DNA of 64,000 nt from Eukaryota sp. TZLM1-RC (Eukaryota; Protista; Metamonada: BaSk clade). A model generated the notes under the pieces. It saw only the letters and a list, made by a program, of their open reading frames with translations, was not told the origin of the DNA and searched no databases. The DNA lies in assembly GCA_040285825.1 (NCBI GenBank), contig JAUPSS010000010.1, positions 990,881 to 1,054,880 on the forward strand. The letters run 5' to 3'. A program made the translations under genes and the position numbers. The stretch's first letter is position 1. The number at the start of each line of letters is the position of its first letter. Below, in pieces: positions 2,104-64,000 of this stretch.

Positions 2104-2796
2104 TTACTTTTGTTTAGAAAAGTATTCTTGGGGCTTGGAGGGATCAATATCGGGGGCTCCTTCGTCAAAGTTAGCGGGGCAAACAGTGCCGTGTTTCTTG
2201 GAATGTTGGAAAGCCTTGAGGAGACGAAGAGACTCATTAGGAGAACGGCCAACAGAAAGATCGTTGGTAGTTTCGTGTCTGACAATGCCTTCGTCATCAA
2301 TCATGACAAGAGTTCTCAACAGAACACCCTCATTGGGGACAAGGCAACGGTATTTGCGACCCCAGTCATGATTAACATCAGCAAGCATAGGAAGTTTGAA
2401 ATCTTCACCAAGACCACCTTGGCTACGTGGCTGCATACACCAGTTCATGTGACAGAAATGGGAATCAGTGGAGATACCCAATACAGCACAGTTGTTCTTT
2501 TCAAACTCAGCAAGCATGTCATTGTAGGCAAGCAGTTCAGTAGGGCAAACAAAAGTGAAATCAAGAGGATAAGCAACTATGATGACCCACTTTCCCTTAA
2601 AATCGGCAAGGGAAATCTCCTTGAAGTTGTGTTGATGGTAGGCCTGGAGCTTGAAATCGGGAGCTGTGGTCAGAATCGATGTGCTTCACTTACCCTTGTT
2701 TCCAACAAGAGGAACAACAGCGGAGTTACAGACTGCTTGAACAGGAGCTTCACAGCAGCATTGACAGCATTGAGATTGAGAGCTACAGCAGGACAT
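2104..2796 (-). CDS. Typical 2-Cys peroxiredoxin with Cys-rich N-terminal extension; 2 exons (2796-2694, 2663-2104)
   Basis: Splicing gives MSCCSSQSQCCQCCCEAP...APDF...YPLDFTFVCPTE...GTVCPANF, with both peroxidatic and resolving Cys motifs. The ORF track shows only the 3' part. Confidence 0.93.
2664..2693 (-). other. 30-nt GT-AG spliceosomal intron
   Basis: GTAAGT...CTGAC-CACAG. It contains an in-frame TGA, and removal restores VGNKAPDF. The paralog at 51243-51272 has an intron at the same position. Confidence 0.9.
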
Positions 2797-6862: not shown

Positions 6863-7119
6863 AAAATAAAAATAATCATCAAAAAGATGCTTACTTTGAT
6901 TTTCCTACAACTGTTGCTCCTACAATGATAAGGAGCAAAATATTTAATGAAACCAAAAGAACTCAAAATATATCAACAATAGTTTTGGAAAAAAATATAC
7001 AGGTCATAGAGACAGGTCACTAATGACGTAACAACACAGCAATCAGCTCATGTGCATTGAAATCAAGTGACACTGTTCACATGAAAAACAAGTTTTGTCA
7101 ATATTGGCCAAAAATGCAG

Positions 7120-7193
7120 CTCCCGCGGTGGGACTTGAACCCACAATCCTTCGATTAAGAGTCGAATGCGTTAACCGATTGCGCCACGCGGGA
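7120..7193 (-). tRNA. tRNA-Lys(CTT)
   Basis: Cloverleaf: TCCCGCG/CGCGGGA acceptor, TTCGA-CTCTTAA-TCGAA anticodon arm, GTGGG-TTCAAGT-CCCAC T arm; TTTTT terminator downstream. Confidence 0.95.
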
Positions 7194-11133: not shown

Positions 11134-11867
11134 CTAATACTTGATAAATGGACATTGCATCCAGTGAGTCCAGCCTGCACTTCCACTGCCCTTAACGGGT
11201 GACTATGATTAAGAGAAGGCTGATTTTCATACTCTAATGACACCCTGCTTGGTTCCACGGGATTCGATAGCCCATCCAGATCCAACATAAACACCAATAT
11301 GGCCCTTCTTCCATAAGCAGAGACCAGGGGTTTCGGGAATAGAACTGATAGGACCCTTCTTGGTGGAGAGGTTGTACATCATATTGGCATTCTTGTCTTG
11401 TGCTGCATTGTATTTCTATGATTAGAGTTAAATCAAGAAACACACAGGTGATCCGCCATTCCACCACAAATATGATTTGATAAGACCAACACTGCGGTTA
11501 AGAAAGAATGTAATAAGCAAACCAATCGGCAGTGCGTTTCTTGTTAAGGTAATTTTGACGGATGAAAGACTCAAACTGGGGTGAGAAAAGGGTAGAGCAT
11601 ACAGGCTTGACATTGTTAGGGTACATGCGGATCTTCTCCTGAAGAATCGACTCAGTCAATTTATAACCAAAAGTGCCAAAGACATAGCTGATCATCAGAA
11701 GGAAATTGAAGAAACAAACCCCCATTTTTCAGCAAGAGCATAAAGTTAAAATATGTGGGATCACAAACCATTTTGGCATGATTGACAAGTCCTGTGCGGG
11801 TTTTAGTACCGGATACGGAAAAGATAAGTAAGCCAAGAAGACAGACAACAACTAAAGAACGACGCAT
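11134..11867 (-). CDS. Secreted NlpC/P60-like (papain-fold) peptidoglycan hydrolase, 184 aa, 7 exons
   Basis: Exons 11867-11769, 11739-11720, 11687-11603, 11575-11523, 11491-11446, 11415-11233, 11202-11134. They give a signal peptide + TKTRTGLVNHAKMALAEKWGYVFGTFG...RTADCVGLIKSYLW...KKGHIGVYVGSGWAIESRG...WTHWMQCPFIKY with a Cys/His/Glu triad. Confidence 0.88.
11740..11768 (-). other. 29-nt non-canonical GT-AT intron (NlpC/P60 gene intron 1)
   Basis: GTTTGTGATCCCACATATTTTAACTTTAT. Only this junction joins the signal-peptide exon in frame to ALAEKWG. Confidence 0.7.
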
Positions 11868-12174: not shown

Positions 12175-14700
12175 TAACTGGAATATTTATTGAGATAAAA
12201 AAACCCATCAAGAATTCAATATCCTCCAAACAAGCGTCACTATTACTAAACCTACTCATATCATTACGTTCATATTCTACACCAATAGCTAAAAGGCCTT
12301 TGAAATCATTGTTGGAATAGACTTGAAAATGCAAAAAACAATTCTATTTAACCAGACAAAGGAATTCATTGTTTTACTAGACCTATTTAGTAACACTTTT
12401 TGGAATTTTTCAAAAAAGTGCAACCCTAAAGGTCCAATATTGCCAACAAGAGAAATTGCAAACGGCACAAACTGATATTTCACATGTACCACTCTACCTA
12501 ACTGTGCCAAAGGTTCTTCATATTTTTATCTTATTTTTTTCGGCGTTAGATAATGGTAAATCAGCGGAATACACTAAACGAGCAGCAGAATTATTGCAAA
12601 CATCAACTGAGACAAATTCTACAACATTGAGAACACCATTGATCCCTGGAGCTACTAAATCTGCCCTTTTTTTCACCAAAGGAATCATCAGTTTGATCTG
12701 GAGATAGCTTACGAACAAAAGTTTCAATAAATGCCTCTATATTGAAACTTTTGCACATGGCATACAATTGATCATAAACTGAGTCATGAACAATTGAGCG
12801 ATAAGTTGTAAAATATTTGCAGTTTAATATATGGGAAAGCGTAACCACACTCTTGCAGCGACAAATTAAATCATTCAGTCACGAACAAGGCCATAAGAAA
12901 CATCTCATTCTCATTGCAGTGGTCCATTAGTGATCATTAAGTAGAAGGCCATAAATGTTGGGAATTTAGGAGATTGGGCAACTTGAGCAACTGTCTTCAA
13001 GATCAATCAAAAAGTTTGCAAAAACGGGATTTTTTTCTTTAGCCAAGCTTAAACGTACAATATAATCCAAGTTTTCTAAAACTTTCAAGATTTTTTTCTG
13101 CAATTTTGCAAAAATCAGTGGTAAGGAGAGCAAGCTTCTTGAAGGAAGTTCCACAATATCAGAGGGGAAACATTTAGCCCAAATATTGGGTGAAAGAGTT
13201 TTAATTTTCTGTTTCAATGAAATAAGATAAGAGCTGTCACAATTTTCAATGAGATGAATTTTTTCAGGAAAACGATTCACAAATTCATAAATAAAATTCT
13301 TTCCACCTCCAATAAAGGCAGTTTTACAAAGGTAGCTTGATTTATGAAAATCAAAACCACCAAAATTTGTACCACAAAAAATGTGGCTTCGTAACTGAGA
13401 TGCATCAAATTCCAATAATTTTGCTAAAAAATTGATTCTTTGTTCATCAAAAATTCGACAAAACTCCAAAGAAATTGATGGTGATGTTGATCTCAAAATA
13501 TGAGTAAATTTTCCAGAATAACAAATTTTTAGAAAAAAGAATTTCAAATGTTTCTCAATATTTAAATTTTCTATTGATTCTAATTCATTTCCAAATTGAG
13601 TCAACAGAGTCGAAAGTTGGCCTTTGACTTCTTTAATATTTCCGAGATAATAACCCAAAAAACGAAAACCAGAGTGATCATAATTGATAAAGGGGACATT
13701 TACATCATTAATGACAAAATCAATTGGTTCATGACCAATAATTAAACATTTGGAGATATTTAATGAGAGACCAATATCTTCATAACGCTGCTGAATAAAA
13801 GTTGCTATTTGTTTGAGAATTGTAATAAGAGCAATTACAGAAATGTCATCAACATATGCAACAATATCTATTTCTGGGAATTTTTCTTTTAATTCGCACA
13901 TTAATGGATGAATTGCCAGACAAAAGAAAAAAGGACCAAGTGGATCGCCTTGTTTAACAGCTGAAGAAGAAAGCAGGTCAAAGTTTTCATAAACCAATGT
14001 TGATGATTTTCCATAAAATGAATAGAAAAAAGGCTCAACTTCAGGAAAATGCTTTCGCAGCAAAGGCAAAATGGAAGAACGAGATACAGAATTAAAAGCA
14101 TTCTTAAAATCTAAATTGAAGATGTAATTAGAATCACTAGAATTAAAAACCCATCAGACGAAAGAGCAGCAGATGAAGCACCATCAATTGTCTTGATTCC
14201 AAATTGAAATGGACTGAAAAATTCTTTGGCTTTTTTCCCAATTCTATTAAAAACAAGAGACGCAAGAATTCTTGAAAACGATTCTCCAATTGCAATTGTA
14301 CGGATTTTGGATTGACTTTTTTTGAGGGCAATTAAGCGAGCACTGGTCATCTCAAAAGGGACTTTAATTTTTAACGTAAGAAGATTGTTAAAAGAAGAAC
14401 AAGATCATCAGCAATTTCAGGACACTGTCCAACAGCTGATTAGATCATGTCAAAATTCAACAAAGATGGCCCAGGAGCTTTTCCAGTAGGCATTTGCTGA
14501 ATCAGTTTCTATACCTCTGAAGCATTGACTGGATTTTGCAGCCAATAATCAACTGAATCTGGTTTAGGACAATGAAAATTTTCTTCTGGATGAAGATGAT
14601 TCAATTGGAAAACTTTGAAACACCTGATATTACCCTTGTGTTGCTGGTACATTCACTTCATTATTTTATTCCTCCTTCTGTACAATGTATACTGACTTTT
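12175..14700 (-). mobile_element. Non-LTR retrotransposon family R2, decayed (RT + REL endonuclease)
   Basis: RLIALKK..KIRTIAIGE, QFGI, VKQGDPLGPFFF, YVDD; C-terminal HILNC...RADLV...VSVDV; several stops and frameshifts. Confidence 0.88.
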
Positions 14701-14989
14701 TTGTGGTGCTTACATGCACCATTGTTCCATAAAAAAAAGAATAACAATAATCGAAAATTCAATTTTTGACCCTTATTTGTAAAATAGATATCTCTTGCAA
14801 TTGAGTCTTTTTCTGTTTTAGTTCATCGTGAGTCATCATATTTTCAGATGGATTCCACGTTTTTCCAATTTCTTCGTTTTTAGCACAATTATAATATTAT
14901 GGAAGTGAATCTCTCAATAAGTAAACACAGTTACCAATTCAGTTAAATTCAGTTAAAATTTATTCTTACTTTAAGGTCAACTCGTCCTT

Positions 14990-16310
14990 GAGCGTCTTTT
15001 ACATTTTGCAGGTCGATTAACAAACTTTGGGTCAAATTGTATTCCTTCTTATTAGAAGTTAATGAATCTTTGATTGGAAGTCATTTGATTTGTTCTTCTT
15101 ATTTGGGTGGAATTGGCTTCATTAAGTCCCTAATTTGTGTTAAGCAGCATATTTGGTAAGTGGAAAAAATTTAGTTTTTGAATTTTTCCAACAGTTCCCT
15201 TATGATGTTCAATCTGATCAAAAGTGAATCTTATTTTTACCTAAATCAAATTCAATGTGAATTCGATAATTTGCCCAGTGATAACTGAATTCTCTGTTTT
15301 CCTCAAAATGTTCTAGAAATTCCGAACCCAATCACTCCCAAATTGACTTTTTTGGATGAAAAAGGTTCACCACTATCTTGTTGAATTATATAAAAGCTTG
15401 AAATACAAGGTAAGACTGAAGACCCCACCTTCGAAGAATTTTCGAAGGACATTCATGATAGTTCTGCTGCTGCTTTAGTAACGCAAATTCTCTCTTTTTA
15501 TGGACTTTTGTTCAAAAACAATGAATGGCTTTAAAACATGCGTTTACGTTGTTTTCTATGGCCAAACAATTTGCCTTATCATTTAACAACTAAATGTTAT
15601 AAACGTCTTTTGTTTACTCATGTATTGAACAGTAAGCATTTTATCACATTTAAAAGTAATGTACATAATAATGTCAGGGACCAAATTTAACTACGGTGAA
15701 AATTCCTGAAATCGAGTAGATTCCTTTTGAGAGCTATCAAAATTAATTCTGGATGACCCCAATATTGATAGTACGCATTACTACAACAGAGCTTCTATGG
15801 GTCTGACAAGAGGTGGTTTGACTGTTTCGGGCCTAAATGGCAGATTTACTATTTTAGATGCCGTGTTCATAGACCCTTTGAATTCTTCTAACCAACATTT
15901 CATTAGTTCCGATGTCGATAAACATCTTCCTGCTAACGAAAAATACAAAATTGCTGATTACGCGAAACCCATTTCCTCTTTAAATGAAAATTCTCATGCC
16001 CAATATAATTTATGTCCCTCTTTTTTTCATTGCTCCAATCTTTAGGTAAGGCTGCTTTGGCTTTCCTTAAGGACTTTAATGTAGTTGTAAAGGAAAACAC
16101 TGAAAGACTTTTTAATCGTTTTTACTGGCAAACAATAGTGTATTGTTTTATAAGGGATTGGTGAAATTAATTTTTGATTCACTTTTTTCTTTTGGTATTT
16201 TTTTGAATCTTGAGTAATAAGCTGTTTTAATGTAGGAGAACCAGGTTTTAAGATTGTGAAGATTTAGATGTGTGTATGCTGTTGTTTTATTCGATTTTTG
16301 ATAAATAAAC
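14990..16310 (+). mobile_element. Non-LTR retrotransposon family R3, decayed 3' half
   Basis: Colinear, diverged match to 58202-59547 (MGLTRG.L.V.GLNG.FTILDA...AKPISS.NENSHAQYNLCP). Confidence 0.85.
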
Positions 16311-16391
16311 ATGGTATCTTTAAAAAACTGAAGTTAGTGAAACAGGTATTTTCTTTTTTTTTCACCAAAATTTCAATTTTATTCAAAACCT

Positions 16392-19300
16392 TTAATTTAT
16401 TGAATTTGCACACTTGATTAAATTAAATCATAACTAATGGGACGACTATCATTAAACCAAGATTTCCTCTACAAAATCTTGATTTGCTTGCTGTCTAGCT
16501 AAAGCTTCTCTAATTCGATTGAAAAACCGCGGTAATCTATTAATAATGGCAAATTGAATCCGTGAACGCCATAAAAAAATATCAAATCTTTTCATTGTTT
16601 TTTCTTTCACCATTTTTTGGAAGTCATCCAAAAAAGTTTCTGCTTCAACTGATAATCTTCCATTTATCGAAAATGGAAAAGCAATAAAAACCAGCTGTGT
16701 ATTTCTATCGATATTTGCATCTTCAATTTCTTTATCATATTTTCTATGTTTTTCTTTTGCTTTAAAATCCAGAGCAGCCACAGGATTAAGTTTTCTTCTG
16801 TGAACCAAAGTATCGTTTGCAACATTACATGAGACAAAGTCAACAATAGCTTCAGAATTATCAATCCAATCACAGTATACATCACCTCTATCATCAGAAC
16901 CAAAAATTATTCAGAGAAAGTGTTTCTTTCAGCAGGGGCTCTTTGATACACGATATCCTTGCAGTTTGTGCCATATTGAAAACAGTGTCTCTAACAGCAT
17001 CATGTAATGAAGAACGATAAGTTATCAATTTAGAGCAATTTAGAGCATGGCGCAAAGTGAGTTGAGGTGAATTCGAACAAATACATTTTTCTTTTGATAA
17101 TAATTGGTTAATGGGGATGTTCAAATATAATCTCATTTTTGTTACAAATGCTTCATTAGTAGCACACAATCCAAATCTTCGTGGTACAATGGTTACAAAA
17201 AGTGAAGAATCTGACACCTTGTTTTCACAAACACCCTTTTCCAATAACAATGAGTGAAGATCTTGATTTAAAACAGCCGAGCTGCAAATATTATTATAAA
17301 GATCTTTTTCATACATTCCAGTCAATCTTTTCTGTAATGTTCGAAGAGTGTACTTCAAATTTAAAACATTTTTTTCTGGAATATTGCCATCGAATGATTG
17401 GGGAAAACATCGACCCCATTTTTCTACATCAATTCTTGAAATTTCTTCATTTAATGCAAAAACAGTGGAACTTTGCGTTGTCATCAATAAATCTTCCCAA
17501 TCTGCAAATCTTTCGGAGAACTCAAAGATTGCATTTCTGCATCCACCAACAAAAGCACACGAGGTAAGAATAGAAGCCTTCGTCCACCCTAAACCACCAT
17601 AATGTGGACTAAGGTAAGCATGATCTGGAATTTGAAACATTTTACATCCCAGTAATTGAGACAGAACTTTTGCACGTAACTCATTAAACTTTTGAGCCAA
17701 AGGTCTAGTGACGAGAGGATTTGTAGATCGAAATATATGATTAAAATTGGAACTAAAACACAGTCTTATAATGGTAAATTTGATGTGTTTTTTTATATCT
17801 AAATTCATCATTCGGTCAATTTTGTCAGAAATTGAGTTCAACTTTTCAAACAATTTTTTTGGTAATTTCATCATTATTTCCTAAAAACGAACCCAAATGA
17901 CGAATAGCATCAATTGAATATAATTTGGCTTGAATTTCAATATCATCAATTATTGTGGAAACTGGAGAATTCGATAACAAAAACACATTTAAGTAAATTA
18001 AGTCGGAGACCAATTTTGGTAAATAATTCTTTAAAACATACAGTTGCTTTTTTTCACAATATTTAATTCACCAATAAGCACAACATCATCCATATATGCA
18101 ATCATTTTTAGTGAAGGAAACATCTCTTGAATTTGCAGTAGAATAGGATGAATGGCCAAACAAAACAAAAGAGGTCCTAACGGATCTCCTTGCTTTACGC
18201 CACTTGATGAAATCAAAATGTTGTTACCAAAATGTAAATTAGAATATGTGCAATATGTTGATTGAAAATATGGTATTAATTCTGGCATATATTGCAATAG
18301 AGCACCATGGATACTGCGACGACTTAGCGAATTGAAAGCATTACTAAAATCCAATGACATGCAAACATTGGATTCATTTTGACGAAATAAGACATCAGTA
18401 GCAAAAATCGCTGAAGAGACTCCATCTGTAGTATTTATACCATATTGAAAGGGTAATAAAATCTTTTTAGCTTTTTCATTGAACCTGCTTAAGCAACACG
18501 CAGAAAAAATATTATGTAAGCTCTCAGAGACTGCAATAGGACGAACATCCATTTTTGAATTTTTGACAAGTGCAGTCAAACGAGAACTTCTAAATTCTTC
18601 TGGGTACTTGCGTTGACCAGATAATATTTGGTTGAAAAATTTGGTCAATAAACCAAGGCAATCTTCTGAAGAAATAATCGCGGCTTTTACATGATCAATA
18701 GTAATACCAGAAAGTCCGGCAGACTTACCACGAGGTCTCTTTTTGATAACCGAAAAAACTTCTGATGGCATCAATGGATAATTTTCCCAGTATGTGCCGT
18801 AAAAATTTTGATCCATAACAGGGTCTTCATAAGGATGAAGTATTTTCAATTTATCTACTGTATCTTCATTGTTCGGTGCTTTGACTCCGGGACTTAAAGC
18901 TGACAAAGCCTTGGACCATTTGTTGTCAAAGCATTTGTCTTCAAAAATTTTACTTAATTTCTCGGATGACTGATTTCTCGGTGCTATATTGGTTAAATCT
19001 TCGGAAATATTAACGAAATTTTGTTCAAAAGGAGGACAAAAAGAACCAAAAATTCCCAAATAATATTGATAGCATACTTTCCTTTACATAATTGATCCAA
19101 AAATCTTTGAAAAACGAAAGCAAATTCATTGCATTTGGTCGGATGAATTTCTTGAGGTATTCTTATAGGAGGATGGTAGTTATCAACCATGCGGCATTTC
19201 AAGCAGCGATCAGAAGTTTTTCCTTTTGCATTTTTTCTAAAAGAAATACCACAAGTGTTGCAAGTTTTGTGCTTCAATCGATTGCTAACTGGTTTTGCAA

Positions 19301-19578
19301 CAACTTGTGGAGCATTATTTATGGGTTCTACCTTAGACTCTTTCCTTCTAATAAATTTTCTTTTACATTTTGTTTCAGAATTTGCCGCATCATTTTTTCC
19401 AACATTGGGGCATATTCGAGCATTATGTCCCTGTTGTCGACACTTTGAGCATCTTTAGGAGCGTGGCTTTGTTTTTGAACAAACTTTTGTTTCATCGTGA
19501 TTGTCTAAAAATTCTTGATCAGAATTTTTTTTGTCCAAAAATGAAGAGAGAAGAGGTTGAGGAGGAGAGGTGGAAAGG
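16392..19578 (-). mobile_element. Non-LTR retrotransposon family R1, ~3.2-kb near full-length copy (CRE/R2-like, single ORF, frameshifted)
   Basis: CCHC knuckle CSKCRQQGHNARIC, second Cys cluster, RT (LDFSNAFNS, GVKQGDPLGP, YMDD), CIC..HALNC and RGDV..VDFVS REL motifs. Flanked by the direct repeat TTCAAAACCT at 16382-16391 and 19579-19588. Confidence 0.92.
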
Positions 19579-20060
19579 TTCAAAACCTATAAATCAACAT
19601 CTAAAAAATTCATCTCTCCCAGAACAAAACACTAGATGCAACTCTCTCATATTGAGATCCAAGAGAAAGCAAAGCATCAGAAACCATCTTCAACATCCCC
19701 TTAAAAATAGAAAACACAATTCTATTTTGCCAAAACAATCTGTTGAAATTTCTGCCAGTTCTTCTCTTTACAATCATTTCAAAATCATCCAAAAAACGTA
19801 AAGCAGTTGGTGCAAGTGAACCAAAAAGGGAAAATACAAATGGATACAAATTCTATTTTGCATGCTGTAGACTGGCCAATTTGGACAAAGGTTCATTGTA
19901 TTTTTTGAATTTAAAATTTTCAGCATTTGAAAGGGAATTATGAATTTCAGAATTAACTAGCCTTTCATTTGAGGCATTACAAGGATCAACAGACATTACA
20001 TTCAATAAAATGAAACTCCATCTAATCCAGGTAATATAACATCACCTCTATTATTCTTAC
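19579..20060 (-). mobile_element. Non-LTR retrotransposon family R4, 3' fragment interrupted by R1
   Basis: YPFVFSLFGSLAPTALRFLDDF...LFWQNRIVFSIFKG; the 3' end GGGAGAGATG...AGATGTTGA is shared with ~43925 and ~48100. Confidence 0.8.
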
Positions 20061-20339
20061 AAAAAGGTATTTTCAAGTTAAATTTGAATCCATTATCAAT
20101 AACATTTATTAATGTTATTGCTCAACTTCAACAACATTGATATTGTCAAATGTTGATGATACTTGGACCCATTCTCCTCAACACAATAGCGAAGTTGCTG
20201 TTTCTCTGCCATCAAATGGAGATGATTAACTTTTTTTGAATCAATATGTGAAAACAGGAGATCAAGAAATAATTTTTGGCTTAAGGATTATTATTATTCC
20301 TTTTCTGGGTCACCACACTATCTGGTATATTTTAATGTA

Positions 20340-20515
20340 TTTACTGAATTTGCTCACTTAATTAAATTAACTCATAACTAATGGGACCACTATCATTGAA
20401 CCAAGATTTCCTCTACAAAATCTCTCTCTGCTTGCTGTCTAGCTGAAGCTTCTCTCATTCGATTGAAAAACCGAGGTAATTTACTAATAATGGCAACTTG
20501 CATCCGAGAACCATG
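20340..20515 (-). mobile_element. Family R1 short 3'-end fragment
   Basis: Matches 16400-16570. Confidence 0.8.
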
Positions 20516-21078
20516 TGGTTAAATCCAACATTTCAAAAACAGTGGAAATTTCAAAGTTGAATCTCAAAGGTAATTCGATGAAACATTCCAATTTTACCTC
20601 TATTAGAATCTGCAAATACGAATTACTGTGTTAAGATTGAAAATGATGTTAGTACTTATCATCTTAAAGATGACGATCCTTTTTGGAAGCCTCCACTAGT
20701 GGAATGAGTTAATATGAGTATATCTGATAATATGCAATTACCAGAATTTCTGTAAACACTACAATAATATGTTCTCGTTTATCAATTGGTCATCAAATGA
20801 AAAGGTAAGTGTTCGAGTGTTAAAGAATGTTCAGAAATTATTCTCTCTTTTTCTAAAAAACAGTAAAAGTGTTTTAGGAAAATCAAAGTTCATAGCAATG
20901 AAAATTAATTAAAACAAGATATAAAATAAGACAGAAATAATAATTTACAAAACTTTATAAACAAAAATAAATAAAAATACCCAGTATTTTTAAATAAAAA
21001 AAAACAAAAAACAATTACAATAAAACAAATTAAATAAAAGAATCAAAAACAACTAAATCCCCGCTAATTGTGCCATAA

Positions 21079-24000
21079 TCAGTGACTTCTTTTCGTTCTT
21101 ATACTGCTTCCGCTCCTTGATCTGTTCAGTGGCGGCAAGTTCTTTTTTCCGCCACTACCAGGTTTTGAACTGAAAGCTAAAGGATTTACCACACCAACTT
21201 GAGGGTTTCTATTAAAAACTTTGTTATAACCCTCCTCTCGATTTACAAGTTCCATTTTGAAAAACTGCATTTCTTGCAAAGTCTTGGCAAGTTCACGTTC
21301 TTTTTGAACCAGTTTTGATTGAAGATCATTAATCATTTCAATATCCTCTGGTCTAGGTTCTCTAGACTCGAATCTTTGCATTAGTTCCAAATTTTCAGCT
21401 TCCAATGCTGAAATTTTGGAGTCAAGATCACTCTGTATGCTGGCCATTTCATCATGTAAATTCCGGACCCGCTCAGAATTCTCATTGACTAGAGCAGAGA
21501 GTTCAAGCTGATGACGTTCTCTAATAGATTGCAACTCTTTGAGATGCTCAGATCCTTGCTGTTCAAGTTCAGTTTTAAAACCATTTTCAACAGAAATCAA
21601 CTGATTTTTGGTCTTTGCCACGTCACCATTAAGCTCTACCACCATTTTTTCCAAATCTTCGACCTTTTTCTTGTACTTACTGACCTTGCCGTCAAGCGAA
21701 GAATTTTTTTGCTTATATTGCTCAATTAATTGTTTATACTCAGCCCTTTTCTTTTTGAATTCCTCATCGTGAACAGCTTGTAGAACAGATTTTTGCTTGT
21801 TGAGCTCTTCTTGTAACGAAATTTTGGCATGTTGTTCTAACTTGGAATATTCGCCTTCAAATTGTTGCTTCAAATTTGAAACATTCGAATCTGCCTTCTC
21901 TTCCAAATTTTGAATCCTATTTTCATACTGATCCTTAAGGAGCTCTATTTCTGATTCTTTTTGATCCTTGAGCTCTTCCAATTTCGCACACCATTGAGAA
22001 TTAATTTTTTGAATTTCTGATTCGTAATATTTGCGATATTCTTCTAGCTTTTTATTTAAATGTTCTTCTTGGTCATTAATGATTTGTTCCGCGGCAGAAG
22101 TCATTTCTCTTTTTGTATCGTTTAATTTGACAATTAATTGAGATTTCTCTTCTTTTAATAGATCTGAAACTTTACTTATATCACTGATTTTTTGATTCAA
22201 TTCCTCAATAGTTGATTCATATTGACTTTTTAAGTTTGAGCTTGATTCTTGAAGTTTCTTCTCCGCGGAAATATTCAAATTCATTATTTCGGTTTTTAAA
22301 GCATTGATCTCTTCTTCGTAATGACTCGTCAAATGTGAAATTTTTGATGTGTGATCTTCTGATATTTTGATGAGCTCTTCTTTGTGTTTTTGTACTAACA
22401 TTTTGATCTCTTCATCGAAATTTTCATTCTCCCTTGTCAACTTGTCAACTGACGCCACCAAATTTTCAACCTTCTTCTCCATTTCAGAGACTTCAAGAGA
22501 CTTTTGCTGATTTTGAGATGATAATTTTGATATTTGATCTTCTAATTTGGTTTGTTTAGAATCCATTTCTTTTAATTTTTTCCGTTCTCCGTCTAATGAT
22601 TTATTTAATTTCTCAATTTCTTTTGAAAATTGTTCATTTTCATTTTGTAATTCACTATTTTTTGTAGTAAATTCAGCAAGTTTGGACTCCAATTGTTTAA
22701 CCAAACCTAGACTGTCTTCTGTTTCGTTTTCCAAATCAGCAACCAAATTGAGTGCCTCATCATGCTTACGTGTCAGTTCGTCAAAAGATGAGCTCAAGTC
22801 TGAAAATTTTGATTCTAACTCACTTAACTCACGTTCAAGATTGTCCTTTTCTTTTTGCAACGTGTCTTTTTGGTTCTGTGACGTCGACTTCTCAGTTTTG
22901 ATTGCCTTGATCTCTGCTCGTAAATCCGAAATTTTGTTATTTTTTGACATTAATTCAGTTTGAATAGCATTTATGTCCATTACTAATTTCGTATTACTTT
23001 CATTCAATTCTTGAAAATCAGATGACATTTTTAAATATTTGGTATTTAAATCAGCTGCTGAAGTCTCGATTGATTGAATTTTTGATTGCAGCTCAGTAAT
23101 CTCTCCATCTTTTTGATCGATTGTGGTCAATAACTCAGAATTTTTCTGCAAAACTTCACTTTTTTCCTGCCGAGTCAAGGCGAGTTCAGAATTTAGTTGA
23201 CCATTTTGACCCTGTAATTCAATCAATTTTTGATTGCTATCAGTTTTGAGTGACTCCAGAGACTCTTGTTGACTTTGTTGAAAACTTTCAAAGTCGCTCT
23301 TAATTTTTGAAAGTTGAGAAGAAAGTCCAGAATTTTCAGATATCAAATTTTCAATACGTTCCCCATCTGAGCTCTTCTTCCTTCTTAAATCCTCCAGATT
23401 TTGGCCCAATTCTTTTTTTTCCTTTCTTAACTTGTCAATTTCTCTCTCATTTTTTATTAAATTACCATTAAATTTCTCCTTGTTGAAATTAAATTCTGAA
23501 TGCAATTCAGTATTTGCTCTATTGAGTTCCTCAATTTTTGCCTCAAGTTTTGAAATTTCTGCAGACATTGCTTGACTTGATTCATTTTTGACCTTATTGA
23601 GCTCTTCTTTACTTGACTTAAGTTGACCCTCTAAATTTTCCTTTTCGTCCAAATACTTCACCATCAGTTCATTATACTTTGAATTATGAGCCTTTATAAA
23701 CTTATCTAATTCTTTTTGGTATTTTTCATACTCGGCCTGTTCAACTTCTTTGGCAAATTTGGAATTTTCCTCTGAGTTTGACTTTAAATTATTTTCCAAT
23801 GATTTCACTTGATTTTCTAACAAAGTCTTGGCTTTTCTTGCAGAATCAAGCTGTTCTTGGAGATTCTGACGTTCTTTTTGAGCCTTTGTGAGTGATTCGG
23901 ACCATTCCTGTTTAAGCTTAACTAGTTCAGAATTAAGAGTTTCAAGTTCATTCTCATGACTTTGGTTGATTTCTTCCTGTTTTTTGACCTGATTGGCTTT

Positions 24001-24324: not shown

Positions 24325-24671
24325 GAACAAGTGTCAAGAATGAGAATGATTATGATGTAAGGAAGAGCAGAGATTCAGTAGGAAGGATGTTTTTAACAAT
24401 TAGGACGAATTTCACATCAATTATTTTTTTTTATTTATTTTGGTCTTTTTTTCGACATAACACAACAATTGATATACTGAATACTATCCAAGTGTTCTTC
24501 GTGTATTTGAATGAAACAAATTCAAGTGGGGACCATTCAGTGTTATTTACAAAACCTGTGGTCAAGGCGCACGTATTGTGTAGTAATCAAGTGGAACTCA
24601 CCGATGTACCATGTCTCAATCGAAAAATTTGTTCAAAATTTGTGAAGACTGAATAAATGATTGATACCATG

Positions 24672-24743
24672 TTCTCTCGCTGAGAATCGAACTCAGATTG
24701 CCTGATTCAGAGTCTGGCGTGCTAACCATTACACTACGAGAGA
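24672..24743 (-). tRNA. tRNA-Gln(CTG), variant copy
   Basis: 72-nt cloverleaf identical to 60278-60349 except at 24703, which creates an A-A mismatch in the anticodon stem. Confidence 0.85.
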
Positions 24744-39352: not shown

Positions 39353-41392
39353 CTAAATCCCTTTACTAGTCCATACAATAGAATTGGCAAACAACCTGTG
39401 ACCATCAGTTGAGCTTTGCCAGCCAGTACAACCAATATCACTACTCCAAGAACCACAACCAAACTCCACAATTCTACCTTGTCCTATTTCATTCTTTGCA
39501 ATCAAAGGACTTCCATTAGACACACTTGCCAACAAGGTTCCATTGACAAGTTGGGCATCTTTACGAGCATGAGGAACAACAAAAGAGTTGACTTTTGTGA
39601 ATACTGGGTCATTTGAGTTTGTTTTAACAATGTTTTGTTGTGAATAAAGGTTAGTATAATTACCCCCACTAAAGCAAGAGTAATTAAACCCTTGGGGGCT
39701 TTTTTGTGGATTAAAGTTGAACAATACCAAACCCTTACCAGCTTCCAACAGCTGGTTAAGGTATTGGCCGGGACAAGAGACAAGGTGAGCATCCAACACC
39801 ACCACATCAAAAGGTTCAAGTTCGTTGTAATTGTTGATGGCGTTACCACTTGAATTAATATCAACTTCTAAATCTCCCCAATTTTCAGTTAAACCTTTAT
39901 TAAGAATGGTGGTTAGGTCGTTAATGTGACCTGAAGAAACCCAAACCCCAACACTAATTTTCGTCATCAATTCCCTTCCTAATAAATTTCTGGAAATTTC
40001 GCCAATATTGTCCCTTGAACAATTGTTTTTAATTACCTTCTCCAACCATTCTTCTTTTCTTTTATTTAAAGAATTTGTTAAAGTAATGTTTGATAATAAA
40101 TTACTTGGAATAGTTGGTAAATCTGGAACTAATTCAAATGAATAATTATCAATAACCTTGCTTAATAACAAAGAGTTGGATTGTTGAATTGCAAAATTAA
40201 CAACATTAATAAATTCTTGATTGGAAAACCTACCAAATTCCAATTTAGAAATAACTAAATCAAAATCAATATTAGAAATTAAATTAGATTCAAGGTTAAA
40301 GAGCCAAATAAAATCTGAAACATTAATTGATTTTGAATTATTGATAAAATTGATAATTAATTTTTGTTTTAATTCCAAGTCAATTTCAAGAGGAATTAAT
40401 TCATCAATTTCATCTCTTGAAGGGAAACAATCTTGACCAATTTGGGCAGCAAGGACAAGTTCCTGAGCTCTTTTTGAAATATTCAGCTTGTCAACATCAA
40501 TCAAATCCTTGCCAAGTAATTTACCTAATAAAGATAGCTTAAAACCAATAGTTTCAGATTCTAAATTATCAAAACAAGAAAATAAACTAGTTTTAAATTC
40601 ATCAACTACATTATAAATCTTTTGAATCTCTTCTTGAGCTCTTTCCTTGGCAGCACCATTAAAAGCAAGTGATTCTTCAACAGTATTTGAGGATTCTAAC
40701 TGTTGAATCTTGATACCTGACTGCCTAATCAAATCACCAATCAAATCATGAAGAAGTGATTGGGATTGATTGAGGGTTTCCCTTACGACAGATTCCACTT
40801 TATCCCCTGATTGAACTACCAAGGGGGTAATAGTGGAAGCCTTGGCCTGAAACTCTTCAATTTGCTTTGTGAAAGCTTCCTTGGCTTGTGAAAAAGAAAC
40901 AAGAGCTTCGTGATGGAGCGAGTGGCCTTGGAGCAAGCCACATGAATCGCATAGAGCAACCTTGCACTTGGTGCAATAATGCTCGATTTGCTTACCCTTA
41001 TGGTGAGGGCATTTTGGCAGGGAGACATTGGAGCGTTCGGAGAGGGGTACGATGTTGTGGGATTGGAATGCTTTCAATGTGTGTGCTTGTTCGGAGCACT
41101 TCCCACAGAAAGATAGATCACACTCAGAGCAGAAGAGGGTGGCAGGAGCATCTTCACATCCTTTGCAGAGCTGGGGTTCGGGAGAGTGTTTAGAGGAGGA
41201 TTCAATGATGTCGCGTAGAGTAATGTTGATACGGTGGCACATGGAAGGAATCACCTCGCGACACTGAGGACAGGTTGAGTTATGCTTCTTTGAGGGCAAC
41301 AGACATCGATCACGACAGAAACTATGACCACACGGGAGCGTAGTTGGCTGTTCCATGACCTGAAGACATATTCCGCATTCTAGGTGAGACAT
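39353..41392 (-). CDS. TRIM-like E3 ligase: RING, two B-boxes, coiled coil, uncharacterised C-terminal alpha/beta domain
   Basis: CGIC..PCGHSFC..C..CPQC RING; CKGC...CSEC..FC..C...H and CPHH...YC..C...CDSC...H B-boxes. The start MSHLEC is supported by the paralog at 63241. Confidence 0.88.
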   Translation of the reverse strand: MSHLECGICLQVMEQPTTLPCGHSFCRDRCLLPSKKHNSTCPQCREVIPSMCHRINITLRDIIESSSKHSPEPQLCKGCEDAPATLFCSECDLSFCGKCSEQAHTLKAFQSHNIVPLSERSNVSLPKCPHHKGKQIEHYCTKCKVALCDSCGLLQGHSLHHEALVSFSQAKEAFTKQIEEFQAKASTITPLVVQSGDKVESVVRETLNQSQSLLHDLIGDLIRQSGIKIQQLESSNTVEESLAFNGAAKERAQEEIQKIYNVVDEFKTSLFSCFDNLESETIGFKLSLLGKLLGKDLIDVDKLNISKRAQELVLAAQIGQDCFPSRDEIDELIPLEIDLELKQKLIINFINNSKSINVSDFIWLFNLESNLISNIDFDLVISKLEFGRFSNQEFINVVNFAIQQSNSLLLSKVIDNYSFELVPDLPTIPSNLLSNITLTNSLNKRKEEWLEKVIKNNCSRDNIGEISRNLLGRELMTKISVGVWVSSGHINDLTTILNKGLTENWGDLEVDINSSGNAINNYNELEPFDVVVLDAHLVSCPGQYLNQLLEAGKGLVLFNFNPQKSPQGFNYSCFSGGNYTNLYSQQNIVKTNSNDPVFTKVNSFVVPHARKDAQLVNGTLLASVSNGSPLIAKNEIGQGRIVEFGCGSWSSDIGCTGWQSSTDGHRLFANSIVWTSKGI

Positions 41393-42345
41393 TAGGAGAT
41401 GTAGATGAGATAATAAATGGTAAAACAAAATATTGAAAGGCTTTTTCGTCATGCTTACGTGGCATTTTGATAATTCTATTGGTTAATATCGTGGGAGACT
41501 ATAAACTGTTGATTGCAACAACTTCAAGATGACTGAGCATTCTTTGGAAAACCTGTTGGTATGGATGAATGTTGAAATATTAGAATAAACCATCAGAAAT
41601 TTAAGATTTAGAGTTGTCCTTTGAATCAATCAATTGATCTGATTATTACTGAAGAATGGATATTTTTAACAATATTTCCAAAAGTCACAGAGTAGGGAAC
41701 AGGTCAAATTGTTTGGAAAGTTTTTGGGACTTTTTATATTACCGTGCTTTGAATTTTGTTCGGAATTCTACATAAAGTATTTGACGCCAGATCAAATATT
41801 ATCATTCTACAACTGCAATGCAGAGACCTGTTTCCATGCAACAGCCCCGTAAGCACAGAGTTACTGTGCTTCATCATTTTCAACCGGTAACCTGCGGGGA
41901 CTATAGAAGCTTTTAACTATTGGAAATGGGGAATGAAATATTACATTAGGATCAGAAGATCTGCAAACATTTGCTAAACGTTTGCTTTTAAAGTATAAAT
42001 TTAGAACTACCTGTTATAGTAATTTGAGAAAGCATTTTCTAATTCAATATTTTGAAAGCACAAACAGAAAGAAAAGAAAAAAATGTCTTTGAAAGACATT
42101 GGAAAATTTTAGCCAAAATTTTCAATATCGTTGTTACTAACTTTACCTTTTAATGCACAGAATGCTTTTACATCAACATTAAAATACTACATTCATCAGA
42201 AAAAACCGGTTTTAAAAAATGCAGGATATAAACTTCACAAAAGAATAAAAACACAAAGATTAGTTCCGTATAGCAAAACTTAATTAAGCACCTTAAAACG
42301 CCTCAATTAATAAAACTATTTATTAAAAAAAACAAGGCACAAAAA

Positions 42346-43549
42346 CTACTTCTTATTCTTACTCTTCGAAGCGTTAAACTTAAACAAACAAATATCTCCG
42401 TCATCAAGATAAGACTCTTTTCCCATCATCATTAACTTCCCGGCCGACTTGACCGCAGCCTCAGTCTCATACTCTTTAAGATCCTCAAACTTCATGACCG
42501 AAGCACAAATGAAGTAGTTTTCCATATCGCTATGAATTCTTCCTGCACATTGCCTAGTAGTCATTCCCTTTCTAAAAGTCCATGCCTTAACTTCCTTTTC
42601 TCCGGCAGTAAAGAAATGGCAAAGGTTCAATGTCTTGTATCCTGAATGGATAATCTTGTTCAACACAGATGGAGCCTTATTTTCCCTAATATAAGCTTCT
42701 CTACTTTCAGGGTCCATTGAATGCAATGTCTTCTCGTATTGGGCAGAAAAAGGGATGGCGGGCTCGTTGCCGTGAGCTTGGATCCATTGAGCTACTTTAG
42801 GCAAGTATTTGCTCTTTTTACGAACGTAATCATCTTCACTCAAATTGATTAAATAAATAACTGGCTTGGCAGTCAACAACTGAAACTCATTAAGCCAATC
42901 AATTTCCTTTGGCTCATAATCAGCAAATCTGATTTGATCACCTTCCTCTAGCATTGCCTTAATCCTGGCAAAAAAGTCATATTCCTCCCGTAAATCTTTG
43001 CTTGCCCTAACCAATCTTGACAACTTCTCCAAATGTTTAGTAACCATTTCTAAATCTTTTTTAATGAGTTCATCAGTAATCATGTCCAAGTCTCTCACAG
43101 GGTCTACTTCTCCTCCCTCATGAGTAGGTACAGTGAGGTCATCAAAGGCACGGACCAAGTGAAAGATACCGTCGACAGCACGGATATGGGAGAGGAAAGC
43201 GTTACCAAGACCAGCACCTTCAGCTGCACCTCGTACTAAACCGGCAATGTCGTAAACATTGAGGTGAGCCTTGACAGCAGAAGTGGGCTTAAACTTCTCT
43301 ACTAACCAGTCAAAGCGAGAGTCAGGGACGTCGCATTGGGCAAGATGAGGGTCAATGGTGGCGAAGCAGAAGTTTGCTTCTTTGCTGTTAGAGTCGGTGA
43401 GAATGTTGAAGATGGTGCTTTTACCAACGTTGGGAGTACCGAATAAAGTAAGTAGGGGTGAATAGAGACATACCTAGACCAAAAGCTACATTTGAAGACA
43501 TTCTACCGAGAAGCTTCTTCTGAGGAGCGGTTTCGACTTTCTTGACCAT
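42346..43549 (-). CDS. OLA1: Obg-like ATPase 1 (YchF/OLA1), 390 aa, 2 exons (43549-43474, 43442-42346)
   Basis: Spliced GLVGTPNVGKST P-loop, FATIDP, DIAGLVRGA..GAGLGNAFLSHIR, LLTAKP, FFTAGEKEVKAWT, TGS-like end DGDICLFKFN. Confidence 0.93.
43443..43473 (-). other. 31-nt non-canonical GT-AT intron in OLA1
   Basis: GTATGTCTCTATTCACCCCTACTTACTTTAT. Removal recreates the conserved Val of G-x-V-G (codon G|TC). The next AG lies inside the P-loop. Confidence 0.8.
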
Positions 43550-44818: not shown

Positions 44819-46148
44819 ATGATCTCTGGTTTCTTTATCATGTCAGCCACTAACGGGTGTGTTTTTAACTCCCATTTATTTCAGCGAAGTCATTGTGATG
44901 AAGCAATGTCTTCATGAAACCCCTCGCTCTGTCTGCAACCATTTCTGGCAACACGTTAAGGAACTGCCTCACGGAGAAGCTGAACCAATTTTTGTCGCTG
45001 GTTCCTTCCGACTCGTTCACATTCTCTATGAATCCGTTTATTGGGTTGCCATCACAAAATCCGATACTTTTGCCCTCTCTCTTTGTGACTACATCCACCA
45101 TATACAAAAGACAACCTGCAACTACATCAAGGGAGCTTCCTCTGATCACCTCACCTCTCACTTTGACACTGTTTTTCTAATTCTAGACCAACTAATTGAC
45201 GCCGGGAACCCCTCGCTCATTGAACCCCACACCCTTGACACATTCTTTGGATCTGCAACCTCTTCCCTCAAGGAGCAATCTTCTGGTGGATTCTCTTCCT
45301 CTCAAGGTCTCTGTGATACCCCAATGAAGGTGTTGTGGCGTCCTGAAGGAGTCAAATACTCTACAAATGAAATCTTTCTTGATTTTATCGAACAAGTCAA
45401 TTGCGTAATGGACTTTAACGGTGTGGTTCTATCGTCTGCCGTCAATGGTAAAGTTATTGCTAAGAGTAAGCTGTCTGGCCATCCTGAACTCACTCTCCAC
45501 TTCAAAAACCCTGGTATTATCGATCACTGCATGCTTCATCGTTGCGCACGGTTAAAGAAATGGTCACGTGATCGATTGGTTTCCTTTGTCCCCCAAGAGG
45601 GTTCGTTTCAATTGATGAATTATGTTGTTTCCAATGCTTCTCCTCTACCTGTGAGTGCAAAGGTAACAATGAATGTTACTGAAAGTAATGATGAAAATGA
45701 GGAGGTTGAGGTTAATATTCAAGTGACACCTAAATCGTTACCAGAAGGGATCAACTTTGAAAATTTGGTCGTGTCGTTTCCGTTGACAAGCACTGTGAGC
45801 TCCCATTCACTTACAGCCAATGTCGGTTCTTATTCCCGCAAAAGTTTCAAGGAAGGGTCTGATTTTTGTGTCTGGAAAATTGGTAAAATTCCACCCAACA
45901 AAATGCCCGTCTTGTCTGGAACTATTTCATTAAGTAAATCCGTTGAGGAAGGTGAGTCGTTGTATGGTGCAGCAAGTGAAAGTTCATTACCCATTGCTAT
46001 TGATTTCACCATTCCTTCTTACTCCTATTCTGGGCTCAAGGTGGACCATTTGCATGTGGGCAGTGAGATTTATAAGGTTTTCAAGGGGGTAAAGTATGAG
46101 ACCCAAGCTGGAGAATATTGGGTGAGGAGTAAAAAGAGAAGCGCTTGA
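44819..46148 (+). CDS. AP3M: Adaptor complex medium subunit, most like AP-3 mu; 28-nt GT-AG intron 44857-44884
   Basis: Spliced start MISGFFIMSATNGEVIV; WRPEGVKYSTNEIFLD, KLSGHPEL, SGLKVDHL...FKGVKY mu-homology motifs. Confidence 0.85.
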
Positions 46149-51139: not shown

Positions 51140-51832
51140 ATGTCCTGCTGTAGTTCCAAAACCCAATGCTGTCAATGCTGCTGTGAAGCTCCTGTTCAAG
51201 CAGTCTGTAACTCCGCTGTTGTTCCTCTTGTTGGAAACAAGGGTAGGTGAAGCACGTCGATTCTGACCACAGCTCCCGATTTCAAGCTCCAGGCCTACCA
51301 TCAACACAACTTCAAGGAGATTTCCCTTGCCGATTTTAAGGGAAAGTGGGTCATCATAGTTGCTTATCCTCTTGATTTCACTTTTGTTTGCCCTACTGAA
51401 CTGCTTGCCTACAATGACATGCTTGCTGAGTTTGAAAAGAACAACTGTGCTGTCTTGGGTATCTCCACTGATTCCCATTTCTGTCACATGAACTGGTGTA
51501 TGCAGCCACGTAGCCAAGGTGGTCTTGGTGAAGATTTCAAACTTCCTATGCTTGCTGATGTTAATCACGACTGGGGTCGCAAATACCGTTGCCTTGTCCC
51601 CAATGAGGGTGTTCTGTTGAGAACTCTTGTCATGATTGATGACGAAGGCATTGTCAGACACGAAACTACCAACGATCTTTCTGTTGGCCGTTCTCCTAAT
51701 GAGTCTCTTCGTCTGCTCAAGGCTTTCCAACATTCCAAGAAACACGGCACTGTTTGCCCTGCTAACTTTGACGAAGGTGCCCCCGATATTGATCCCTCCA
51801 AGCCTCAAGAATACTTTTCTAAACAAAAGTAA
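51140..51832 (+). CDS. 2-Cys peroxiredoxin paralog with Cys-rich N-terminus; 30-nt intron 51243-51272
   Basis: MSCCSSKTQCCQCCCEAP...; the C-terminal 137 aa are identical to the 2104-2796 copy; intron GTAGGT...CTGACCACAG. Confidence 0.93.
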
Positions 51833-59547: not shown

Positions 59548-60277
59548 AAAAAACGCAATTCTATTTTGTCATAAAGATAATGATGAATCGTTTATTCTTC
59601 TTGTGCTAGAAAAAACAACGGTTGAAAGTTGATTCAACAAAAAGGAGTTAGTTTTTCTAAAGTTTCGAAACACAACTTTTGGAATTTCAATAATTCATAA
59701 GATTTACACAATATGAAACGAATTTTGTTCAACCAAAATTTCTTGGACAAAATCAGTATAAATGACCATGTGCAATTGAAATTTTCCCAAATCTTCGAGG
59801 CTCATAAATTATACCAAAATGTGCATTTATTTACTTTTTCTTACAACAATGGAGGAAATTTTCCTCTACAACATATGATTTGTATATATTTTCAAGAACA
59901 TTATTTTCATGCACTCTAGTCAACAAATTTTTCTCTTCGCAGAGTGTATTTCAAATCCGTTTTTGGGGTTTTTTTGAGCGATTGAAGAAAACACTGCTTC
60001 CATATTTGTGTGTCAATTTTTGAAATTTCTGCATTTACTTAATTAATACTGTTCGGTAGCCATTAGTAAATCTATTGACTATAGAAAATCTTTCCGAGAA
60101 CCCAAATGAGGCACTTCTAAGTTCCACAATTAAAACACAATAAGTAAATCTTTAGTTATTCTATAACTCGAAGCACCTTAATTACCAGAATTTCAAACAA
60201 AATTCCTGATTGTTGCTTTCCCTCGGAGACATATTCGAACTTCTCTCTGTAGTGTAATTGTTCCGGAAAAAACATAG

Positions 60278-60349
60278 TTCTCTCGCTGAGAATCGAACTC
60301 AGATTGCCAGATTCAGAGTCTGGCGTGCTAACCATTACACTACGAGAGA
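60278..60349 (-). tRNA. tRNA-Gln(CTG)
   Basis: TCTCTCG/CGAGAGA acceptor, CCAGA-CTCTGAA-TCTGG anticodon arm, CTGAG-TTCGATT-CTCAG T arm; T6 terminator downstream. Confidence 0.93.
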
Positions 60350-63240: not shown

Positions 63241-64000
63241 ATGTCTCACCTAGAATGCGGAATATGCCTTCAGATCATGGAGCAACCGACTACGCTCCCT
63301 TGTGGTCATAGCTTCTGTCGTGATCGATGTCTGTTGCCCTCAAAGAAGCATAACTCCACCTGTCCTCAATGCCGCGAGGAGATTCCATCAATGTCTCACC
63401 GTATCAATATTACTCTGCGAGATATCATTGAATCCTCCTCTCAACACTCTCCCGAACCTCAACTCTGTAAAGGATGCGAAGATGCTCCTGCCACCCTCTT
63501 CTGCTCTGATTGCGATTCTTCTCTTTGCAAGAACTGTTCTGACCATGCACATATTCTCAAGATGTTCCAATCCCATAACATCGTACCCCTCTCCGAACGT
63601 TCCAATGTCTCCTTGCCAAAATGCCCTCACCATAAGGCTAAACAAATCGAGCATTATTGCACCAAGTGCAAGGTTGCTCTATGCGATTCATGTGGCTTGC
63701 TCCAAGGCCACTCACTCCACCATGAAGCTCTTGTTTCTTTTTCACAAGCCAAGGAAGCCTTCACAAAGCAAATTGAAGAGTTTCAGGCCAGAGCTTCTAC
63801 TATTACCCCCTTAGTAGTTCAATCCGGGGATAAAGTAGAATCTGTCGTAAGGGAAACCCTCAATCAATCCCAATCAATTCTTCATGATTTGATTGGTGAT
63901 TTGATTAGACAGTCAGGCACCAAACTTCAGCAGTTGGAATCATCAAATACTGTTGAAGAATCACTTGCTTTTGATGGTGCTGCCAAGGAAAGAGCTCAAG
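63241..64000 (+). CDS. Second TRIM-like RING-B-box-B-box-coiled-coil paralog (runs off window end)
   Basis: Open frame from ATG 63241 (MSHLECGICLQIMEQP...), highly similar to 41392-40635. Absent from the ORF track because there is no stop within the window. Confidence 0.9.
   Translation, partial: MSHLECGICLQIMEQPTTLPCGHSFCRDRCLLPSKKHNSTCPQCREEIPSMSHRINITLRDIIESSSQHSPEPQLCKGCEDAPATLFCSDCDSSLCKNCSDHAHILKMFQSHNIVPLSERSNVSLPKCPHHKAKQIEHYCTKCKVALCDSCGLLQGHSLHHEALVSFSQAKEAFTKQIEEFQARASTITPLVVQSGDKVESVVRETLNQSQSILHDLIGDLIRQSGTKLQQLESSNTVEESLAFDGAAKERAQ

Follow-up and report, generated by a model that had tools for sequence, protein, structure and literature searches.

We report that Skoliomonas litria, a soda-lake flagellate whose type isolate is TZLM1-RC, has a single OLA1 gene, and that this gene is interrupted by 31 nt (43473..43443) that start with GT and end with AT. 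With high probability this stretch is a genuine, recently gained mini-intron of the U2 type that is removed by a mechanism of the fused branch-point/3′ splice-site kind. All positions refer to a window of 64,000 nt of contig JAUPSS010000010.1 unless they carry the prefix of another sequence. The terminal AG of introns is among the most conserved signals of eukaryotic gene expression, and an essential single-copy gene that depends on AT in its place would, in a free-living relative of Giardia with further introns of this kind, amount to a natural experiment on how the site of the second splicing step is chosen.

The OLA1 reading frame and its splice junction

OLA1 lies on the minus strand (43549..42346), and reading-frame analysis indicated that exactly these 31 nt must be removed (Table 1). 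Exon 1 encodes MVKK...NVAFGL (MVKKVETAPQKKLLGRMSSNVAFGL), followed by a G, and equals residues 1-25 of GenBank protein P9112_001867. Exon 2 is an open stretch of 364 codons, 100% identical to the same protein, which opens with TC GGT ACT CCC AAC GTT GGT AAA AGC and so provides V-GTPNVGKST, the P-loop of the Obg-like ATPase. Left unspliced, the exon 1 frame reaches a TAA 19 codons further on. The P-loop frame is blocked upstream by an in-frame TAG that spans the junction of exon 1 with the intron, and its next Met lies more than 100 codons past the P-loop; exon 2 therefore lacks any start of its own. Between the donor and the P-loop there is no AG: one abuts the donor upstream, and the next falls within the GKS codons. 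No GT-AG, GC-AG or AT-AC pair was found that restores the OLA1 frame.

All 31-nt deletions that keep OLA1 open from ATG to stop were enumerated by a script. There were 86 of them, and only the removal of 43473..43443 combined a good donor with the product FGLVGTPNVGKST. Moving the cut by 1-5 bases in either direction changed the Val to Phe, Gly or Ser and produced termini such as GG-TA or TA-TT. Seven OLA1 proteins of plant, animal, amoebal and metamonad origin were aligned: all have a Val at the place of Val26 before the P-loop, and none shows a gap between the GR motif and the P-loop. At the level of the reading frame, the observation that OLA1 needs the removal of a 31-nt GT...AT intron is confirmed. 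The first-pass annotation of this DNA had proposed the same intron, running from GTATGT to ACTTTAT with no AG before the P-loop, and the deletion scan, the deposited protein and the intronless sister orthologs described below bear it out.

For protein searches the exons were used individually as queries, and P9112_001867 stood in for the joined OLA1 model. Exon 2 retrieved this 390-aa GenBank protein ('Eukaryota sp. TZLM1-RC') at 100% identity; its sequence, ...NVAFGLVGTPNVGKST, agrees exactly with the GT...AT splice. On JAUPSS010000010.1 the gene occupies 1204 nt for a product of 390 aa, and the deposited model must therefore leave out 31 nt. The depositors already model the AT-ending intron of OLA1. 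Gene prediction in S. litria was guided by RNA-seq and supplemented by manual curation, and the text of the genome paper makes no mention of intron termini (PMC11316075). An intact OLA1 paralog, which the earlier annotation had named as potential counter-evidence, did not turn up: the protein searches found no second OLA1 of S. litria. A metagenome scan with the GenBank OLA1 protein returned nothing closer than 49% identity, and no environmental skoliomonad copies or transcripts.

A second AT-ending intron in an unrelated gene

The first of six mini-introns in a gene for a small secreted protein also ends with AT (Table 1). The annotated gene takes up 734 nt for 184 aa, which leaves 179 nt of intron; the six introns (29+32+27+31+30+30 nt) add up to 179 nt, match the annotated span and leave an open frame of 184 codons. 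Intron 1 reads GTTTGT...AACTTTAT and is followed by an exon of 20 nt, whose own frame is closed by a TAA 9 nt upstream and contains no ATG after it, so that the frame of this exon needs the intron to be removed. Beyond intron 1 the first AG is the one that terminates intron 2, and its use destroys the frame. A 29-nt GT-AT intron at this place had been postulated in the first-pass annotation, and both the sum of the six introns and the lack of an available AG uphold it. Sliding the intron by one base (TT...TG) yields an identical mRNA, and GT...AT would hence be its natural but not its sole formal reading. Pfam searches with single exons of this gene gave no matches; its Cys/His motifs may be NlpC/P60-like.

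For both the OLA1 and the 29-nt site, we infer splicing from the integrity of the genes, conservation, the depositors' model and the architecture of the motifs.

Shared architecture of the introns in the window

In and around the window, the contig annotation lists 12 introns, which belong to only seven genes. Two of them, of 22 nt (547-568) and 23 nt (14159-14137), were left out of the tally; ten credible introns remain, nine of them independent, as the two peroxiredoxin copies are duplicates. The ten introns are 27-32 nt long, and their donors follow GT[ATG][ATG]G[TCA]. Eight end with AG and two with AT, the same count that had been given from the letters alone. An A at position -7, followed by a pyrimidine and contained in YTNAY, occurs in nine of the ten, both AT-ending introns included, and the A is at -8 in the remaining one; with about 32% A, the probability of finding nine out of ten by chance is roughly 2×10−4. 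Examples of the 3′ tails are CTGAC-CACAG, CTAAT-CATAG, TTAAC-CGCAG, CTTAC-TTTAT and TTAAC-TTTAT. Both AT-ending introns thus retain the A at -2, their spacer is TTT, and their branch-like motif is at the same fixed distance from the AT end as it is from the AG ends of the others, a relation that the first-pass annotation had not noted.

Two of ten fits the claim that AT-ending introns form a recurrent class; the further claim that the class is common rests on ten introns.

Table 1. Introns, exons and splicing motifs discussed in the text (positions within the window)
Feature	Position	Strand	Remarks
OLA1 exon 1	43474..43549	(-)	ATG 43549-43547; 25 codons + first base of Val codon
OLA1 intron, 31 nt, GT...AT, phase 1	43443..43473	(-)	starts GTATGT, last heptamer ACTTTAT
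OLA1 5′ splice site GTATGT	43468..43473	(-)	donor type common to other window introns
OLA1 putative branch point CTTAC	43448..43452	(-)	candidate branch A at 43449 (intron position -7)
OLA1 exon 2	42346..43442	(-)	P-loop to TAG stop 42346-42348; Pfam MMR_HSR1 and YchF-GTPase_C
Small secreted-protein gene, 184 aa, six mini-introns	11134..11867	(-)	signal-peptide-like N-terminus
Intron 1 of 184-aa gene, 29 nt, GT...AT, phase 0	11740..11768	(-)	TTAAC, A at 11746 (-7)
Intron 2 of 184-aa gene, 32 nt, GT-AG	11688..11719	(-)	exception: A at -8
Intron 3 of 184-aa gene, 27 nt, GT-AG	11576..11602	(-)	
Intron 4 of 184-aa gene, 31 nt, GT-AG	11492..11522	(-)	
Intron 5 of 184-aa gene, 30 nt, GT-AG	11416..11445	(-)	
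Intron 6 of 184-aa gene, 30 nt, GT-AG	11203..11232	(-)	
AP-complex mu subunit intron, 28 nt, GT-AG	44857..44884	(+)	for comparison; position conserved in GEM-RC
Peroxiredoxin copy A intron, 30 nt, GT-AG	51243..51272	(+)	ends CTGACCACAG
Peroxiredoxin copy B intron, 30 nt, GT-AG	2664..2693	(-)	duplicate of copy A

A loose version of the full intron motif matched 28 times in the window. Eighteen of these matches were AT-ended, and two of the 18 are required by a reading frame. Detection of AT-ending introns by motif only was rejected as unspecific, and with 18 matches for two real introns the signal is weak, so that something else must add specificity. The heptamer ACTTTAT was also rejected as a signal in itself: with 19 occurrences found and 15.7 expected, it is not enriched in the window. 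Given the rule that places the branch A at -7, its presence in both AT-ending introns would be only a modest coincidence.

No introns were found in a further 10 kb of the contig, nor any usable ones in 15137..21718, a region of retroelement debris. Inside the intronless DUF8286 gene (8497-10131), a 33-nt in-frame stretch (10039-10071, plus strand) has an AT end and an A at -7, and its first 11 nt (GTTTGTGATCC) recur at the start of the AT-ending intron at 11768. The stretch may be an intron that is spliced optionally, without effect on the frame, or the likeness may be a coincidence.

Orthologs in sister isolates

We compared OLA1 with its orthologs in the isolates GEM-RC, which is sister to TZLM1-RC, and TZLM3-RCL, which represents the deepest skoliomonad branch. 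The TZLM3-RCL ortholog (P0002; 68% identical) is an uninterrupted frame of 1182 nt (L001:3001-4182). The 5′ part of OLA1 in GEM-RC (L088:2032...) reads MVKKVESPPPKKLLGRMSTSVSFGLVGCPNVGKST and is unbroken at the intron site. Coding sequence is thus contiguous at this site in both sisters, as FGLVG in GEM-RC and MALVG in TZLM3-RCL. Together with the branching order, the lack of the intron in both makes one gain on the S. litria branch the simplest history, which would make the OLA1 intron a recent acquisition.

The GT-AG intron of the AP-complex mu subunit gene has a different history. Its counterpart in GEM-RC (L087) is 31 nt long, interrupts the same Gly codon and has an A at -7; as the position is common to both isolates, this intron is older than that of OLA1.

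In the GEM-RC annotation both genes are split into two models, OLA1 at L088:2320-2350 (137 aa and 231 aa) by a frameshift downstream of the intron site, and AP-mu at L087:4770-4785 (250 aa and 175 aa) by a single-base frameshift. Missed non-canonical introns were rejected as the cause of these splits, since single-base frameshifts were found instead; the latter are likely to be assembly indels.

Classification and comparison with known introns

Both AT-ending introns were scored as having U2-type donors (consensus GTRNGT; GTATGT at 43473-43468 and GTTTGT at 11768-11763) and, by motif, U2-type branch sites (YTNAY; CTTAC and TTAAC, with the putative branch A at -7), and their removal restores a conserved reading frame, as is the case for U2-type introns. 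They depart from this type in the terminal AG: both end with AT, and no AG is available to either. By its motif, CTTAC is the candidate branch site of the OLA1 intron. The donors GTATGTCT and GTTTGTGA do not agree with the U12-type RTATCCTT, and the branch-like motif lies 6 nt from the intron end, where a U12-type branch site (TCCTTAAC) would be located 10-15 nt from it; these mismatches rule out U12-type identity. No pairing of the intron ends was predicted (MFE 0 and -2.6 kcal/mol), and versions with flanking sequence folded no better than shuffles, which gives no sign of a structure-based removal of the euglenid or bulge-helix-bulge type.

The closest resemblance is to introns of other metamonads. 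Skoliomonads are sister to Fornicata (PMC11316075). The introns of Giardia, Spironucleus and Trichomonas are described as GTATGT...CTRAC-ACAC-AG, with a fused branch-point/3′ splice site, and in Trichomonas a shift of the branch motif by 2 or 7 nt is reported to have abolished splicing (Vanacova 2005 as cited in PMC1501061; PMC10711314; PMC6679479; PMC2483917). The introns of S. litria likewise have a GTATGT-type donor, a short and uniform length (27-32 nt) and a near-invariant distance of YTNAY from the 3′ end, and they share with metamonad fused introns the lack of a real polypyrimidine tract. They differ in that the A is at -7 instead of -8, one base closer to the end, and in a looser motif: the ACACAG tail is replaced by variable tails (CACAG, CATAG, CGCAG, TTTAT). 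Moreover, two of ten end with AT, whereas the described sets from Giardia, Spironucleus and Trichomonas end with AG, and introns are more numerous in S. litria than in Giardia. The AT-ending introns would fit an AT-tolerant form of the metamonad fused branch-point/3′ splice-site introns.

Single GT-AT introns have been described elsewhere. In Giardia, a candidate 30-nt GT-AT 'type A' intron in DinF is spliced in about 1% of reads (PMC10711314, Table 1). It agrees with the AT-ending introns of S. litria in size class, GT donor and AT end, but is a single case and may be noise, whereas the OLA1 intron breaks an essential motif of a single-copy gene and needs efficient removal. Animal GT-AT introns are rare and comprise a U2-type case in DGCR2 and U12-type cases, seven in human and mouse (PMC1557818). 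They have the same terminal dinucleotides, and they show AU to be an end after which a spliceosome is able to join exons; however, they are long, mostly of the U12 type and isolated among hundreds of thousands of other introns, in contrast to the introns of S. litria, which lack the U12 consensus, are 29-31 nt long and reach a local frequency of about one in five. Euglenids and diplonemids have non-conventional introns without conserved borders whose ends pair (PMC12621601). S. litria resembles them as a protist lineage with introns that lack GT-AG ends, of which euglenids and diplonemids have many, but here the donor is canonical, the last base alone deviates and no pairing is predicted. No account of AT-ending introns of skoliomonads or barthelonids emerged from full-text searches of the literature.

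Alternative explanations

The 31 nt might be a real intron whose borders are other than GT...AT, through a shifted 31-nt cut or a different length. As many as 86 deletions keep the OLA1 frame open, and the 29-nt intron can be slid by one base without effect on the mRNA; still, we regard such borders as very unlikely, since only the GT...AT cut creates the Val before GxPNVGKST that is invariant in the compared proteins and present in both intronless sisters, since every alternative cut in OLA1 has worse termini, and since none of the accepted terminal pairs restores the frame. An error of sequencing or assembly, with true AG ends and a miscalled T at 43443 and 11740, appears even less probable. 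The single-base frameshifts that split OLA1 and AP-mu in the sister assembly of GEM-RC speak for such an error, but these are indels and not substitutions, the S. litria assembly has 206x Illumina coverage (PMC11316075), and the same change of G to T would be needed at two unrelated intron ends. The depositors' protein model also uses the AT junction.

Our expectation is lower again for OLA1 of S. litria being a young pseudogene that was broken by a 31-nt insertion. The absence of the insert from both sister isolates would agree with this, yet the gene is the sole OLA1 found for S. litria, its long second exon has stayed intact and is conserved, the insert matches local introns exactly in length, donor and 3′ motif spacing, and an independent gene shows the same pattern. 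The least probable explanation is that splicing does not take place and that ribosomes perform a +1 frameshift, or hop from the CTA Leu codon at the end of exon 1 to a CTA in the insert. The insert shifts the frame by +1, and a CTA in the P-loop frame does lie 22 nt downstream of the last codon of exon 1; such recoding would nevertheless lengthen the invariant spacing of the beta-1 strand and the P-loop by 4-10 residues, and the insert has a branch-like motif at standard spacing as well as a full donor. Nor is a stimulatory structure predicted, and the 29-nt case needs a different shift.

Proposed mechanism and implications

The GTATGT donor of the OLA1 intron would pair with U1 and U6. The branch A in CTTAC would precede the last intron base by 6 nt, a spacing also seen in the nearby AG-ending introns. 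After branching, so short and fixed a tether may bring a single defined phosphodiester into the active site where the exons are ligated. An A would be kept at -2, and the last base, normally G, could be U; AT ends would then represent a relaxed last base in introns whose geometry has already determined which bond is attacked. In structures of the post-catalytic yeast spliceosome, A(-2) of the 3′ splice site forms a pair with the branch A, as does G(-1) with the 5′ G(+1), and yeast Slu7 and Prp18 are dispensable when the distance from branch point to 3′ splice site is very short. Both facts fit an A(-2) that is kept and a U(-1) that is tolerated. The AT ends can be read as a relaxation because the introns of Giardia, Trichomonas and Spironucleus work at a fixed distance and those of S. 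litria have the same design. On the evidence of these motifs, the machinery of S. litria probably picks intron ends by their distance from the branch point and not by the identity of the bases.

A broader proposal, to which we give somewhat less than an even chance, is that the 3′ splice site of S. litria is measured and not read. The bond attacked would be the one 6 nt past the branch A, with little needed beyond an A at -2; roughly one-tenth to one-fifth of U2-type introns would end with AT, new introns could become fixed without an AG, and S. litria would be the first eukaryote known to have GT-AT introns of the major spliceosome as a common class.

If the AT ends are real, they bear on whether a short, fixed tether between branch point and 3′ end makes proofreading of the last base dispensable, and the OLA1 intron bears on the birth of new introns. 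New in the present analysis are a base-exact junction in an essential single-copy gene, its match to a deposited protein and a gain dated by two intronless sister orthologs, as well as the older GT-AG intron of AP-mu as a contrast and the clearing of spurious annotated introns. With gene finders and RNA-seq aligners that accept only GT-AG, GC-AG and AT-AC, genes of this clade will come out broken or truncated. The statement in the first-pass annotation that gene finders would miss the class holds only in part, as the public annotation contains the exact OLA1 splice and the pipeline errs in other ways, namely by spurious 22-23-nt introns and the split models of GEM-RC. Overall, the interpretation given there is partly supported.

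Other features of the window

The annotated 22-nt GT-AG 'intron' at 547-568, in a 209-aa model (463-1114, plus strand), is collinear with coding sequence of the same retroelement in a better preserved copy at 16894..17874 (94.7% identity), and a 1-nt indel lies just downstream of it. It was rejected as a real intron; the predictor bridged a frameshift. The 23-nt 'intron' at 14159-14137, in a reverse-transcriptase (RVT_1) gene (12966-14350, minus strand) that aligns at 74% identity with the copy at 18031..19059, is probably the same kind of artefact. Since the pipeline bridges retroelement frameshifts with tiny introns, an annotated intron is no proof of splicing. Degenerate copies of non-LTR-like retroelements occur at about 12900-20000 and to the left of the window (L005:15163-21125), with RVT_1 and YMDD at 18031..19059. 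Many of them are annotated as separate short genes, and the ORF at 16894..17874 has no annotated product.

Two peroxiredoxin (AhpC-TSA) genes (2104-2796, minus strand; 51140-51832, plus strand) are separated by about 49 kb, inverted relative to each other and 95% identical over 833 nt including flanks. Both contain the same 30-nt intron, with two substitutions between the copies, and this together with the identity indicates a recent segmental duplication. An intronless 237-aa gene (5518-6231, plus strand) has a weak Pfam match to Cas12f1-like_TNB, a TnpB/Fanzor-type nuclease domain. Paralogous, intronless B-box and RING zinc-finger genes are located at 39353-41452 (minus strand; 699 aa) and 63277-64000 (plus strand; 668 aa, running past the window), respectively. 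The window also contains one tRNA-Lys(CTT) and two tRNA-Gln(CTG) genes (7119-7193, 24671-24743 and 60277-60349, all on the minus strand). No suppressor tRNA was found in the window and all three stop codons close long ORFs, which points to the standard genetic code.
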